Of a DNA stretch of 64,000 bases, positions 17,824-22,927 are shown piece after piece. The stretch covers positions 62,001-126,000 of the forward strand of contig NIVC01000096.1 in the NCBI GenBank assembly GCA_002269645.1, given 5' to 3'. The position numbers and the translations under genes are program-made. Under the pieces are notes generated by a model. The model saw nothing but the letters and a program-made list of their open reading frames with translations, had not been told where the DNA came from and made no database searches. Numbering within the stretch: the stretch's first letter is position 1; each line of letters begins with the position of its first letter. This DNA comes from Macrostomum lignano. Lineage: Eukaryota.

Positions 17824-20800
17824 TTATTTCACCGGCGCTGAGCTGAGACTTGGCGCCACCACAATGCCCCGTTCCGTTCGCATTTCAAATTGGCGCCAAA
17901 CCGCAATGCCGTCCTCGTTAACGCGCAAATGTTCGGCAATCTTCTCCCAGACTTTCTTCTTGGGATTGAGCTCCTTGTCCGGGCCCAATGGGATCTCAGC
18001 AACTCCTTCGAATCCGACTCGGTCGCCCGGATTCGAACCTTCCGGCGGGTTCAGCGGCTCAACAGTGGCGCCGTCGGTGGCGCTGGCGCACAGCAGCATG
18101 GCGCTGGACTCGATGCCGCGCATTTTAGCCGGCTTCAAATTGCAGAGGAACAGGAACAGCTGATTGCGCAACTGGTCAGCCGGCAGGTACTTCACCAGGC
18201 CCGACACTACAGTCCGAGGCCGGTCCTCGCCCAGATCCACCGACTCAACGTACAGCTGGTCGGCGTCTGGGTGGACCGAGACGTCCAGGATGCGGCCGAC
18301 CCGGATGTCCAGACGGTGAGGGTTCAGCTCGTCTGCTGCTGCACCGGCTGACTCTGCGGCGGGGGAGAGGTTGGAGGGGGTGAGGGTTTGAATGGATTTG
18401 ACGACAGAATTTTTGGCGCTATCTGACACTCAGCTTTGGCGCCAACTGACACTCGGTTTTGGCGCTATCTGACATTTACTTTTGGCGCTATCTGACATTC
18501 AATTTTGGCGCTATCTGACACTCAATTTTGGCGCTATCTGACACTCATTTTTGGCGCTGACACTTATTTTTGGCGCCAACTGAGACTTAGTTTTGGCGCT
18601 ATCTGACACCTATTTTCGGCGCTATCTGACATCTATTTTCGGCACCATTTGACACTCATTTTTGACGCTATTTGGCGCTCACACTTTTGGCGCTATCTGA
18701 CACCTATTTTCGGCGCTATCTGACACTTACTTTAGGCGCCAACTGACACTCATTTTTGGCGCCAACTGAAACTCATTTTAGCGACATTTATTTTGGCGCT
18801 ATCTGACACTCATTTTGGGGCTATGGCTATCTGACGCTCAATTTTGGGGCCAATTCAATGGCATACCAAAAATTTCAGATTTTTCGATCTCCAAAGCTAG
18901 AAAAGCTACTACTGACAGTAGCCATAAACAAATAGGTATTTAATAGTTGAAAAATATAAACTCACTCTTATCAGGCTCAGCAAATGCGCCGTCCAGTTTT
19001 TTAGTCAGCTCGGGGCCAATCAACTCTCGCAGACGGTTCTGCATCTCCAGCAGGCCAGACTCCACGTGGGCTTTCAGGTCGCCGGGGTGCAGAAACTGGC
19101 AGTTGTGTAGGCAAGGGGTTGAAAATGTAGAAATTTACAAGATTAACCACCTGCGTCTCTAACTGCCACTCCCTGCGTCTCTAACTGCCTCTCCCTGCAT
19201 CTCTAACTGCCTCTCCCTGCATCTCTAACTGCCTCTCCCTGCGTCTCTAACTGCCACTCCCTGCGTCTCTAACTGCCTCTTCCTGCATCTCTAACTGCCT
19301 CTCCCTGCGTCTCTAAGAGCTTCTCCCTGTATCTCTAACTGCCTCTCCCTGTATCTCTAACTGCCTCTCCCTGCGTCTCTAACTGCCTCTCCCTGCGTCT
19401 CTAAGAGCCTCTCCCTGCATCTCTAAGAGCCTCTCCCTGCATTTCTAACTGCCTCTCCCTGCGTCTCTAACAGCCTCTCCCTGTATCTCTAACTGCCTCA
19501 CCCTGCATCTCTAACTGCCTTTCCCAGCATCTCTAACTGCCTCTCTGCGTCTCTAACAGCCTCTCCCTGCATCTCTAACTGCCTCTCCCTGCGTCTCTAA
19601 GAGCCTCTCCCTGCATCTCTAAGAGCCTCTCCCTGCATTTCTAACTGCCTCTCCCTGCGTCTCTAACAGCCTCTCCCTGTATCTCTAACTGCCTCACCCT
19701 GCATCTCTAACTGCCTTTCCCAGCATCTCTAACTGCCACTCCCTGCGTCTCTAACTGCCTCTTCCTGCATCTCTAACTGCCTCTCCCTGCGTCTCTAAGA
19801 GCCTCTCCCTGTATCTTTAACTGCCTCTCCCTGCGTCTCTAACTGCCTCTCCCTGCGTCTCTAACTGCCTCTCCCTGCGTCTCTAAGAGCCTCTCCCTGC
19901 ATCTCTAAGAGCCTCTCCCTGCATTTCTAACTGCCTCACCCTGCATCTCTAACTGCCTCTCCCAGCATCTCTAACTGCCTCTCTGCGTCTCTAACAGCCT
20001 CTCCCTGCGTCTCTAACAGCCTCTCCCTGCGTCTCTAAGAGTCTCTCCCTGCATCTCTAACTGCCTCTCCCTGCATCTCTAACTGCCTCTCCCTGCGTCT
20101 CTAACAGCCTCTCCCTGCATCTCTAAGAGCCTCTCCCTGCATCTCTAACTGCCTCTTCCTGCGTCTCTAATTGCCTCTCCCTGTATCTCTAAGAGTCTCT
20201 CCCTGCATCTCTAACTGCCTCTCCCTGGTCTCCAACTGCCTCTCCCTGCGTCTCTAACAGCCTCTCCCTGCATCTCTAACTGCCTCTCCATGCATCTCTA
20301 ACTGCCTCTCTCTGCATCTCTAACTGCCTCTCCCTGCATCTCTAACTGCCTTATCCGAATCTAACAGAAGCACTACCAGACGGCAAAGATTTGTCACCTT
20401 ATCAACAAACGCAGACTTCAACTCATCGAAGCTGGCAAACACCAGGTCGCCACCGAGTTCAGCAGACCGAGACACCCGGATGCTGTCACCTTCTGAGCCG
20501 CTGAGTCGTTTAAATGGCAGCAACAGCAGCCGCAGGCAGTCCAACGGCGGGCACCGGTCAACATTGCCAGGCTCGCAGAACATTTTTTTAACCTTCTTTT
20601 TCAAACTGGCAGCCGACTCCAAAGCTAAGATGGCGCTATCAGGATCAGACAAGCTCATGCTGGACAGGCCAGTGAGGCCTGGCAGTTGAGCATGAGCATA
20701 GCTAGGAGTTTCCGGGTAGCCCAGACGATTAAGAGCGAGAGAGGAGAACTCGGACAAGCTGGACTCGTCTTGGCCGCAAAGGCGGACGGAGGCCCGGCAG

Positions 20801-22927
20801 TGGTGGGCGTCCAGAGCGGACAGACAGGGCCACAGCAGGTGGGAGAGTGGCGGGTGCTCGCCGTGAGAGAGGACGCCAGAGCCGGCTTGCATTGCCTGGG
20901 CGAAGGGGCGGAGTAGAGTGTGCTCATAATATTGTTTGTGCAGGCATTTCATCGTTTTTGTTTCTTTTATTTCGTCTTGAATAATTTCTTTAATAGATAG
21001 ATAGATAGATAGATAGATAGATAGATAGATAGATAAATAGATACATAGATAGATAGATAGATAGATAGATAGATAGATAGATAAATAGATAGATAGATAG
21101 ATAGATAGATAAATAGATAGATAGATAGATAGATAGATAAATAGATAGATAGATAGATAGATAAATAGATAGATAGATAGATAAATAGATAGATAGATAG
21201 ATAGATAGATAGATAGATAGATAGATAGATAGATAGATAGATAGATAGATAGATAGATAGATAGACAGATAGATAGATAGATAGACAGGTAGATAGATAG
21301 ATAGATAGACAGAAAGACACACAGGCACTGACAGGTAGATAGGTGACAATCAAAGAAACCTTTTTTTCTACGGTCTGTCTATTTTAAGACTGTTGCATTT
21401 TATCTAACTGCTCCTCACCTCGTCAACAGTAACTAAAGACACCAGACGATACATATCCAGCACGTAGTCTTTGTTATAGCTCAACTCTTCTAGGCCAGAA
21501 GTCACAGTGACGGCAGCGGCAGCTGTGTCGCCTAGGAGACCAGTTGCCAAGCGACTTAGCACATCTTTAACTGTCGAACCTCTAACTTCCAGTGAGTCAA
21601 TTGGAGCTCGCTTCCTATCTAAGAAAGCCTGCATCTCGGACACTAACAAGGTGACCTTCCAGCCAGCCTTGGCCATAGACAGGGCGCCAATCAATGGCAC
21701 CAGGTGTCCCAGGTGCATCGGACCGCTAGGTCTAATTGTCCATAGCAACCTGGGTGATGAACCAGATTTGACTGGCACAGAATCTTGAGAACCAAACTGA
21801 GTAGCAAACCGACTCAGCGATTCAATCAGTTTGGCGTCGATGGTGGCCAGTTGAATTCCAGCCAGACGGTCGGCTACATCGCCAGCATCCCCACCGCTGC
21901 TGCTCTTAGCTGGTTGATCCTTCGGATAGGCATCCACCAGGAGCTGTTGAAGCTCCGAAGATTCTTCGAATTCTTTTCTAACGGGACCCAGCAACCGGTT
22001 CAGACTGTCAGCAACGCAGCCTTTCAAATCTTCGGCAGTTAAACTACCCGACGCGAAATCTTCAGACACCTGTTGGAATTCGGCGTAACGTTTCTTCGAC
22101 GAACCAATCGCTAGGCCATCGGTGCCGCCTAGCAACGGGAAGACAACGTACTGTAGGAAGCTGAGAACTCCGTTGCCTTCGGCGGCTCCGGGAGAGCATT
22201 GAGCGCCGGCAACCTTAGCGCTAACAGACTCAGCCGAGTCTAGCAAGTCAATCTTTGAATCGGCCTCAGAGGCGGACATCTTACCGCCAGTCAGGCCGGG
22301 AATCATGGGATTCATCAGGTGGATTCGTTTAGCGTAGCCTAAATTAACCAGATACTTCTCAGCTAGCATGAATATTTTTCTTTGATCTACGCCGCCAAAT
22401 TGAGCATCAACTCCAAGGTACTGCTCGTCAAGAGCCTGCAGACAAGGATAAAGGAGGCCGGAAATCAACGGACTGGCTACCTGTTTAACCACCTCTGCGC
22501 CGGCCTTCTTAGCATCGTGAACCGTGACCTCGGCGGCGATACGGTAAACATCTCTGGTGTACTCTTTTCCCAACTCAAAATCTGTGCCGCGAACAAATTT
22601 CAATCGATCAAGCGGTACTCCAATCGATTTTAGCATGCCTTTAATCACAGTTTCGTAATAATTTGTACGTTTATTAAGCAGCGACCAAGGCGCTTTCATA
22701 TTGTCCAGGTAGGCGTGCAAGTCGGCGAACAGGACAGTCACGTGACACCCGGCTAGCAGGTAATCGGCCAGCTTACTCATCGGTACAAAATAGGCAACAT
22801 GAGGCCTGCCGGTTGTGGCCGTGCCCCAGTACACGCTCAACTCGTGTTTGGCTGTTTTAGCTTTGAGTCTGTCTAGGCCTACTACTTCTTGTAGGTTGCG
22901 GATTATGAGTTGCTGTTTTTGAGTCAT
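17824..22927 (-). CDS. YARS1: Cytosolic tyrosyl-tRNA synthetase, double-length (two synthetase units + EMAP-II-like/tRNA-binding OB C-domain), 888 aa
   Basis: Exons 22927-21419, 20895-20398, 19095-18966, 18353-17824 (2667 nt, phase-consistent). Unit 1: [48 protein letters not shown]. Unit 2: [42 protein letters not shown]-domain: [41 protein letters not shown]...[15 protein letters not shown]. Confidence 0.95.
18410..18850. repeat. ~21-bp minisatellite, YARS intron 3
   Basis: Unit ttttggcgctatctgacact(c); shares the tttggc(g/a)cta core with the 30825-31700 array. Confidence 0.92.
19150..20350. repeat. 22-bp minisatellite, YARS intron 2
   Basis: Unit ctctaactgcctctccctgc(a/g)t. Confidence 0.96.
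20995..21312. repeat. (GATA)n microsatellite, YARS intron 1
   Basis: agatagat run. Confidence 0.97.

Follow-up and report, generated by a model that had tools for sequence, protein, structure and literature searches.

A double-length tyrosyl-tRNA synthetase gene with complementary losses in its two halves in the flatworm Macrostomum lignano

We analysed a 64,000 nt stretch of the genome of the flatworm Macrostomum lignano (GCA_002269645.1, contig NIVC01000096.1, positions 62,001-126,000), hereafter called the window, to whose positions all coordinates refer. On its minus strand it carries a gene for a tyrosyl-tRNA synthetase (TyrRS) of double length. In silico splicing of the open reading frame (ORF) joined four exons into 2667 nt, which stay in frame up to a single terminal stop and encode 888 aa. 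All three introns have GT..AG ends, and the exon junctions (21419/20895, 20398/19095 and 18966/18353) are the same as those placed by an initial annotation of this DNA. From the N- to the C-terminus the protein consists of a first TyrRS unit, a linker, a second TyrRS unit and an EMAPII-like tRNA_bind domain. Unit 1, the linker and the first 132 residues of unit 2 are encoded contiguously in exon 1, such that the fusion is a property of the DNA rather than an artefact of the gene predictor.

The domain content was determined by profile and sequence searches. Pfam recognised tRNA-synt_1b (PF00579, E 1.5e-79) in two stretches and tRNA_bind (PF01588, E 8e-28) at residues 729-823, which is the composition expected by the initial annotation. 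Using the zebrafish TyrRS core as phmmer query, unit 1 was found at aa 1-338 (458 bits) and unit 2 at aa 372-711 (163 bits); the two units are 29% identical over 306 aa (E 3e-30). A single polypeptide hence contains two complete TyrRS units, each with a catalytic and an anticodon domain. Among the structures in the PDB, human TyrRS (7rou and 1n3l) was matched with E 7e-133. For residues 724-891 the human TyrRS C-domain (1ntg) as well as 1euj and 1fl0 were matched at E 1e-45 to 2e-48, and the OB-fold tRNA_bind profile is followed by the EMAPII C-terminal extension that marks the EMAPII-like or Trbp111 type. The tRNA-synt_1b profile, HIGH/KMSKS-type motifs and the tyrosine pocket, which together characterise a class Ic TyrRS of the archaeal/eukaryotic type, coincide in unit 1 only.

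TyrRS works as an obligate dimer and shows half-of-the-sites reactivity. In the complex of the Methanocaldococcus jannaschii enzyme with tRNA (1J1U), G34 is reportedly read by Asp286 and stacked between Phe261 and His283, which correspond to the FGGD (Phe261) and HPxDLK (Asp286, His283) motifs. Motifs of the LGGD and HPGDLK type matter for this reason. In an alignment of all units with single-length animal TyrRS, numbered as in human/zebrafish, unit 1 keeps Y39, HVAY (VYWG..HVAY, aa 32-46), Y166, Q170 and D173, GGVDQ with Q188, and KMSAS, and is in these positions identical to the single-length animal enzymes. On its anticodon side a degraded 13-residue segment takes the place of KKKLKKAFCEPGN, (F/N)GGD is missing and LTAEDLK replaces HPGDLK. 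Unit 2 shows the reverse: on the catalytic side it has Leu at position 39, HLGH, W166 and S170, CGQDE with Glu in place of Q188, and SSMSL lacking the KMSKS lysine, and on the anticodon side K242, K244 and K246, FCEPGN, R279, GG and HPGDLK are all kept.

To quantify this pattern we scored each unit at those positions where 12 single-length animal TyrRS show at least 90% invariance. In the catalytic domain unit 1 keeps 129 of the 149 invariant positions and unit 2 only 52. In the anticodon-binding domain 31 (unit 1) and 26 (unit 2) of 47 positions are kept, but these are complementary subsets whose union reaches 43 of 47 (hand count from the aligned strings); the share of unit 1 comprises KIDLLD after the KMSKS loop and the helix core. 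Judged from the aligned sequences, the catalytic asymmetry between the units is strong, and for the tRNA side the asymmetry lies in the choice of retained residues and not in the general degree of conservation. At the sequence level the protein is thus intrinsically asymmetric, having one active site and one anticodon site that are predicted to be functional, in different units. Every motif quoted by the initial annotation was recovered in the alignment, and its central proposal, a single-chain double TyrRS with reciprocal loss between the halves and a terminal EMAPII domain, was borne out by alignment and scoring alike.

A second genomic copy of the gene (locus L006 of PAA91082.1, contig NIVC01000095.1) has the same four-exon structure with identical junction residues, among them VTVDE before and AMQAG after the exon 1/2 junction. 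The encoded proteins differ at 11 residues, and the introns measure 691/419/587 nt in the copy versus 523/1302/612 nt in the window. The coding sequences of the two copies show 25 synonymous and 11 nonsynonymous differences. The ratio of the nonsynonymous to the synonymous proportion (pN/pS), derived from small counts throughout, is 0.04 for unit 1, 0.25 for unit 2 and 0 for EMAPII; within unit 2 it is 0.40 in the Rossmann part and 0.11 in the anticodon part. These differences fit purifying selection along the entire chain, relaxed in the degenerate Rossmann half of unit 2. An independent 888-aa M. lignano model (UniProt A0A1I8ILR9) differs from the window protein in 8 residues, and the PAA91082.1 protein cluster holds six M. 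lignano entries, with public models of 867 and 888 aa. Judged by these public gene models, the gene looks expressed.

The positions of all features of the gene are collected in Table 1. Tandem arrays fill each of its introns as well as both immediate flanks (17005-17728, 18409-18779, 19150-20351, 20993-21317 and 23013-24754), with repeat units of 4, 22, 23 and 24 bp; one array can also be read at 47 bp.

Table 1. Position of the TyrRS gene and of its parts in the window.
Feature	Position	Strand	Basis or remark
Whole TyrRS gene, ATG to stop	17824..22927	-	4 exons, 3 introns, 888 aa; 99% identical to M. lignano PAA91082.1
Exon 1 (1509 nt, aa 1-503): unit 1, linker, first 132 aa of unit 2	21419..22927	-	continuous ORF, GTGAGG donor
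Intron 1, 523 nt, mostly (ATAG)n array	20896..21418	-	sequence
Exon 2 (aa 504-669)	20398..20895	-	in silico splicing; exon matched in second genomic copy L006
Intron 2, 1302 nt, 22-bp tandem array, ~55 copies	19096..20397	-	sequence
Exon 3 (aa 670-712 + 1 nt), starting two residues ahead of the His in HPGDLK	18966..19095	-	splicing
Intron 3, 612 nt, containing a 23-bp tandem array, ~16 copies	18354..18965	-	sequence
Exon 4: EMAPII-like / tRNA_bind domain (aa 720-888 = 17827-18333) and TAA stop (17824-17826)	17824..18353	-	Pfam PF01588; PDB 1ntg, E 2e-48 over residues 724-888
Unit 1 (aa 1-340), TyrRS copy predicted to be catalytically intact	21908..22927	-	motifs, phmmer, TM 0.94 to human 7rou
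Unit 1 HVAY	22790-22801	-	motif alignment
Unit 1 YPCLQALD	22427-22450	-	motif alignment
Unit 1 GGVDQ	22382-22396	-	motif alignment
Unit 1 KMSAS	22268-22282	-	motif alignment
Unit 1 degraded K-rich anticodon motif (13 residues)	22184-22222	-	motif alignment
Unit 1 degraded LTAEDLK	22022-22042	-	motif alignment
Inter-unit linker (aa 341-371), Ser/Gly/Ala/Asp-rich, predicted disordered	21815..21907	-	pLDDT <50, residues 342-366 of P0001
Unit 2 (aa 372-711, spans introns 1 and 2): degenerate Rossmann half and predicted anticodon-competent C-terminal half	18970..21814	-	phmmer, motifs
Unit 2 LLWT..HLGH (HLGH = aa 405-408)	21704-21748	-	motif alignment
Unit 2 VSEMQ	21629-21643	-	motif alignment
Unit 2 WPCLSALD	20809-20832	-	motif alignment
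Unit 2 CGQDE	20764-20778	-	motif alignment
Unit 2 SSMSLS	20647-20664	-	motif alignment
Unit 2 retained K-rich anticodon motif (aa 602-614)	20563-20601	-	motif alignment
Unit 2 LGGD	20446-20460	-	motif alignment
Unit 2 HPGDLK (aa 672-677)	19072-19089	-	motif alignment

Homologues were searched with P0001, an M. lignano protein 99% identical to that of the window. With M. lignano unit 2 as the sole query, a word-indexed search yielded nothing but single-length animal TyrRS (30-36% identity), and flatworm relatives were not among them. Exhaustive phmmer searches and cluster look-ups provided double-length TyrRS from Taenia crassiceps (984 aa), Schistosoma japonicum (970 aa), Heterobilharzia americana and Opisthorchis viverrini. 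A profile search with three flatworm unit 2 sequences, in which 8000 candidates were scored, added just fragments from Opisthorchis and Schistosoma mattheei. Unit 2 of Macrostomum, Taenia and Heterobilharzia has 72 invariant columns in common, including W.I.P.G..HLGH..PL, Y.LD.YRLVSLV, LL.PC and HPGDLK. In neighbour-joining (NJ) trees the flatworm unit 2 sequences form a clade with 84% bootstrap for the whole unit and 66% for the anticodon domain alone. Given the common unit 2 signatures and this grouping, the flatworm double TyrRS proteins appear to be orthologous to the window gene and form one orthogroup. Taenia, Schistosoma, Heterobilharzia and Opisthorchis thus probably share one flatworm origin with Macrostomum, and the duplication would predate the split between Macrostomorpha and Neodermata. 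The intron positions are uninformative for dating: the three introns of M. lignano are not shared with the twelve of Taenia, and in the crustacean Hyalella unit 2 and EMAPII lie in one exon.

In the neodermatan proteins (P0160 and P0162; Taenia, Schistosoma) the EMAPII domain reaches 32-39 bits versus 97 bits in Macrostomum, and unit 2 carries long insertions around the former KMSKS loop, which suggests further decay in the parasitic lineages. Two candidate sequence traits were discarded. Cys at human position 168, the sole residue exclusive to the two M. lignano units, was rejected as unit 1 of the other flatworms lacks it, and an 'AAEGNGVL' insertion was dropped as a trait of flatworm unit 1 because the alignment shows no insertion there in M. 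lignano.

Double-length TyrRS has previously been found in trypanosomatids and plants. In our searches unit 2 alone scored 164 bits to human TyrRS, 145 bits to the yeast enzyme, about 70 bits to plant TyrRS and 34 bits to the enzymes of Leishmania major and L. donovani, and unit 1 scored 448 bits to human TyrRS versus 91 bits to Leishmania. The halves thus have no specific relation to the trypanosomatid halves; by these matches both of them are of the animal type. As both units are far closer to human TyrRS and a metazoan EMAPII domain stands at the end, the flatworm enzyme originated independently of the trypanosomatid one. Independence had already been proposed in the initial annotation, and it stands on these scores, for plants as well as far as tested.

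Among the closest known analogues are the trypanosomatid enzymes (L. major 3P0H/3P0I/3P0J, L. donovani 5USF, T. brucei), in which one chain likewise contains two TyrRS units, a catalytic N-terminal one with a defective anticodon domain and a non-catalytic, anticodon-competent C-terminal one. In the L. major pseudo-dimer there is one site for catalysis and one for the anticodon, and the T. brucei enzyme depends on both of its units (PMC8319005). Apart from their independent origin, the flatworm and trypanosomatid proteins differ in their low identity (18-20%), in the C-terminal EMAPII domain of the flatworm enzyme and in HLGH, which is kept in flatworm unit 2, whereas the C-terminal half of the Leishmania enzyme lost both HIGH and KMSKS. 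The anticodon defect of unit 1 also differs, being a substitution of contact motifs in the flatworm and a six-residue deletion as described for Leishmania (PMC8319005). Human YARS1, a mini-TyrRS with an EMAPII-like C-domain (1N3L, 1NTG), has the same order of core and EMAPII and is 59% identical to unit 1, but lacks the second, degenerate core that the flatworm enzyme has between catalytic core and EMAPII. YARS1 is a homodimer with two EMAPII domains, whereas the flatworm enzyme is probably a monomeric pseudo-dimer with one. The double TyrRS of plants (Arabidopsis At1g28350) also has two tandem units per chain and is listed as 'pseudo-dimer' (PMC7564348), but HIGH and KMSKS are reported in both of its halves (PMC9437257). 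It has no EMAPII and belongs to a different TyrRS lineage; here we set it apart by its published description.

Among animals the architecture is not, as the initial annotation implied, restricted to one lineage. Beside the flatworms, reciprocal pseudo-dimers were found in nematodes (Heligmosomoides, Aphelenchoides, Mesorhabditis, Meloidogyne), a pseudoscorpion (Cordylochernes), spider mites (Tetranychus, Panonychus) and Malacostraca (Procambarus, Homarus, Cherax, Penaeus, Palaemon, Scylla, Hyalella, Idotea, Halocaridina). The malacostracan proteins align over 100% of the query at 43-46% identity and contain two tRNA-synt_1b and a tRNA_bind domain. Five Logan transcriptome proteins, P0003 (SRR7472190), P0004 (SRR25454219), P0156, P0157 and P0159, have the same architecture, and very probably Caenorhabditis elegans also has the double form. 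In every animal case one unit carries the full catalytic signature and lost the three anticodon motifs, while the other shows the reverse with a variable degree of catalytic decay. This decay ranges from both halves being nearly intact in P0003 (LgnA), which lost only the anticodon motifs of unit 1 and whose unit 2 still looks catalytically intact, to just 26% identity between the halves. An EMAPII domain terminates the proteins of Malacostraca, the pseudoscorpion and two transcriptome lineages, and is absent in nematodes and mites; in all five EMAPII-bearing lineages it adjoins the anticodon-competent unit. The spider mite enzymes have the reversed order with the anticodon-competent unit first, and nematode unit 2 differs from that of flatworms in keeping KMSxS-like loops. 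Single-length TyrRS was found in the sampled insects, a myriapod, molluscs, echinoderms and vertebrates.

Further TyrRS proteins of deviating length came up in these searches. Malacostracan proteins (P0008, P0010, P0011, P0014, P0015, P0017, P0018) have about 90 additional N-terminal residues (SY[IV]xGYxxTxxD…[ST]RWxxH[IM]), for which Pfam gave no match and which presumably resemble the eEF1B-beta/GST-C-like N-terminus used for contacts within the multi-synthetase complex. The mollusc Gigantopelta aegis has an entry (P0002, 1151 aa, 'tyrosine--tRNA ligase 2, cytoplasmic-like') with three nearly identical TyrRS cores in tandem, which is less likely to be a differentiated pseudo-dimer than an artefact of gene model or assembly or the outcome of tandem amplification in the very recent past. 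Proteins of double-unit length (P0328 and P0343-P0348, 682-795 aa) from diatoms (Thalassiosira pseudonana) and from a dinoflagellate-labelled entry indicate that double-length TyrRS seems to recur widely outside animals, plants and trypanosomatids.

How often the form arose within animals cannot be counted from NJ trees of all units, since these are dominated by long-branch attraction: all degenerate units fall into one cluster (82%), and one N-terminal unit of a mite is drawn into it, away from its orthologues. Trees restricted to single domains resolve only the sisterhood of the two catalytic domains of P0003 (80%) and the weak monophyly of the flatworms. In Tetranychus urticae (L004, HE587313.1, gene 2001-5155) both TyrRS units are interrupted by introns at three in-register positions, namely after LYPxLQ, after HL(I/M)xP(Q/M) and two residues before the His of the HPDDLK-type motif (LHPDDLK in unit 1, LSPDDLK in unit 2), which shows that the units result from a genomic tandem duplication of a multi-exon block. 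The start of exon 3 in M. lignano, i.e. the position of intron 2, coincides with an intron position in both Tetranychus units. From the in-register introns, the reversed order in mites and the mutually sister catalytic domains of P0003 we regard it as certain that there was more than one origin within animals, at least for some lineages.

The flatworm gene itself could still go back to a single ancient duplication that it has in common with the genes of nematodes, crustaceans and other animals, next to which a single-length YARS1 persisted for long and was differentially lost. Flatworm and nematode units indeed group in the NJ trees (unit 1 with 86% and 70%, unit 2 with 59%), HLG-type motifs are common to unit 2 of both, and M. 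lignano unit 2 has nine residues exclusively in common with malacostracan unit 2. All nine are, however, located in the relaxed active-site region, and the groupings come from trees in which long-branch attraction is clearly present. Moreover, a return from a degenerate double gene to single length is impossible, so that the single-length genes of the sampled animals cannot descend from such an ancestor unless two essential genes coexisted for very long and were lost many times. Together with the reversed mite order and the P0003 domains, this makes one shared duplication unlikely. We consider it somewhat better than even odds that asymmetric single-chain TyrRS pseudo-dimers are recurrent, with at least three and perhaps six or more independent animal origins (among flatworms, nematodes, Malacostraca, acariform mites, a pseudoscorpion and several transcriptome lineages) and the same complementary loss each time.

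A different question is what the degenerate Rossmann half of unit 2 does. Its pocket could have been neofunctionalised to bind a different ligand (ATP, a nucleotide signal or an amino acid other than tyrosine), turning unit 2 into a pseudo-enzyme that regulates or diversifies the enzyme. In agreement with such a role, the canonical-looking HLGH is invariant in flatworm unit 2, the Asp equivalent to D173 is kept, and the Rossmann-part pN/pS lies below 1. HLG[FY], HLGH or HIGH motifs also recur in unit 2 of nematodes and of two transcriptome lineages, despite the lost tyrosine pocket. This pN/pS value is however based on 7 nonsynonymous and 6 synonymous changes, and a scaffold for the dimer interface would also be under purifying selection. 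Considering furthermore that Y39, Y166, Q170 and Q188 are all replaced, that the KMSKS lysine is lost, that only 52 of the 149 invariant catalytic positions are left and that the KMSKS loop has long insertions in Neodermata, a new ligand-binding function appears rather improbable.

The arrangement of the halves was addressed with an AlphaFold2 model computed on an alignment of 21 double-length animal proteins. The model has a mean predicted local distance difference test score (pLDDT) of 82.9 and a predicted template modelling (TM) score (pTM) of 0.72, with low confidence confined to the KMSKS loop of unit 1 and to two linkers, that between the units (342-366) and that ahead of EMAPII. In a Foldseek comparison with the PDB, unit 1 matches human TyrRS 7rou with a TM score of 0.94. 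The alignments of the model with 5usf, 3p0j, 3p0i and 3p0h, the pseudo-dimers of Leishmania, extend over about 745 columns and have TM scores, normalised to the target, of 0.79-0.82 at 18-20% identity. The halves are thus predicted to pack as in the crystallised Leishmania pseudo-dimer, which is supportive, though not independent, evidence for the monomeric pseudo-dimer anticipated in the initial annotation. Alternatively, halves of different chains could pair, either head-to-tail or unit 1 with unit 1, to form a dimer or higher oligomer in which unit 2 would be an appended tRNA-binding module. The flexible linker of about 30 residues would permit such domain swapping. We find pairing between chains very improbable given the predicted packing and the intramolecular pseudo-dimers of the crystallised Leishmania enzymes, and a dimer via unit 1 would in addition place two defective anticodon domains in the canonical cross-subunit position.

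An artefact of assembly or annotation, such as a collapsed tandem duplicate or two merged genes, might be suspected in the repeat-rich M. lignano assemblies at a locus embedded in tandem arrays, and the Gigantopelta entry does resemble one, but for the window gene it is practically refuted: units that are only 29% identical cannot be a mis-assembled recent repeat, they are joined within a single exon, the second genomic copy has the same structure, and independent 867- and 888-aa models as well as orthologues in four other flatworm genera exist.

Altogether we propose, at a probability of roughly 85%, that the gene encodes the functional cytosolic TyrRS of M. lignano and that this enzyme acts as an intramolecular pseudo-dimer. 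Most likely, the two TyrRS units of one 98-kDa chain fold back on each other and replace the usual homodimer. Unit 1 would provide the sole working active site, at which tyrosine is activated with ATP and transferred to tRNA, and the Rossmann half of unit 2 would be retained mainly as the obligatory dimer partner. The C-terminal helical domain of unit 2 would be the sole working site for recognition of the anticodon (G34), such that one tRNATyr would span both halves in the way it spans the subunit pair of an ordinary TyrRS. The one EMAPII-like domain, located right behind the anticodon-competent unit, probably adds general affinity for tRNA. Such an enzyme may have arisen by tandem duplication of an animal-type YARS1 core upstream of EMAPII, at the latest in the common ancestor of Macrostomorpha and Neodermata, followed by reciprocal, complementary degeneration, i.e. 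by duplication-degeneration-complementation within one polypeptide. As neither half could then work alone, this degeneration would be effectively irreversible.

Several observations weigh against this proposal. The anticodon domain of unit 2 is overall not better conserved than that of unit 1, neither by the number of invariant positions (26/47 vs 31/47) nor by identity to the single-length enzymes (36% vs 43%). The invariance of HLGH and of the D173-equivalent Asp in unit 2 across Macrostomum, Taenia and Heterobilharzia hints at some residual binding of a ligand, beyond the simple picture of a dead half. The AlphaFold model derives from only 21 sequences, and as TyrRS dimers and the Leishmania structure were part of the training, the predicted packing is not an independent test. 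Finally, expression is deduced from public gene models whose ORF begins in the 5' untranslated region (in P0001, IQHN precedes Met).

Elsewhere in the window, Pfam applied to ten other long ORFs found only one above the curated cut-off, an HSP70-like ORF of 469 aa (57747-59156, minus strand; PF00012, E 1e-75). A marginal match to EutN_CcmL (26 bits, no passing stretch) is probably spurious, and the remaining ORFs mostly look repeat-derived.

The literature cases of double-length TyrRS that we found are the trypanosomatids with reciprocal loss and plant At1g28350, whose halves both appear active. The name 'the parasitic TyrRS' is still used for the double-length form in a 2024 review, a survey of helminth aminoacyl-tRNA synthetases does not mention TyrRS architecture, and in a 2005 paper C. 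elegans Y105E8A.19 (now yars-1), which is essential, is merely listed with 'unknown function' and as a relative of fly TyrRS. Our literature searches found no paper describing an animal double-length TyrRS, though Larson et al. 2011 may contain a passing mention, and public databases label the animal proteins simply 'tyrosine--tRNA ligase'. The initial annotation had named prior reports of a wide occurrence in animals as what would undo its novelty: the wide occurrence is there in the databases, but a paper reporting it was not found. The double TyrRS of flatworms, nematodes, crustaceans and mites has thus apparently not been described so far.

A covalently fused pseudo-dimer freezes the half-of-the-sites asymmetry of a textbook obligate dimer. 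Until now pseudo-dimers with reciprocal loss were described only in trypanosomatids, and the main interest of our finding lies in their recurrence across animals. With lineages at different stages of decay, they offer replicated natural experiments on subfunctionalisation within one polypeptide and on its repeated direction. If the reading is true, TyrRS would be a replicated experiment in constructive-neutral 'ratchet' evolution on a half-of-the-sites enzyme. M. lignano is a transgenic flatworm model and would, together with C. elegans, allow in vivo tests of each half. Moreover, major helminth parasites (Schistosoma, Taenia, Opisthorchis and parasitic nematodes) would then possess an essential TyrRS that is architecturally unlike that of their host, which is the same argument that stands behind the structural work on Leishmania TyrRS.

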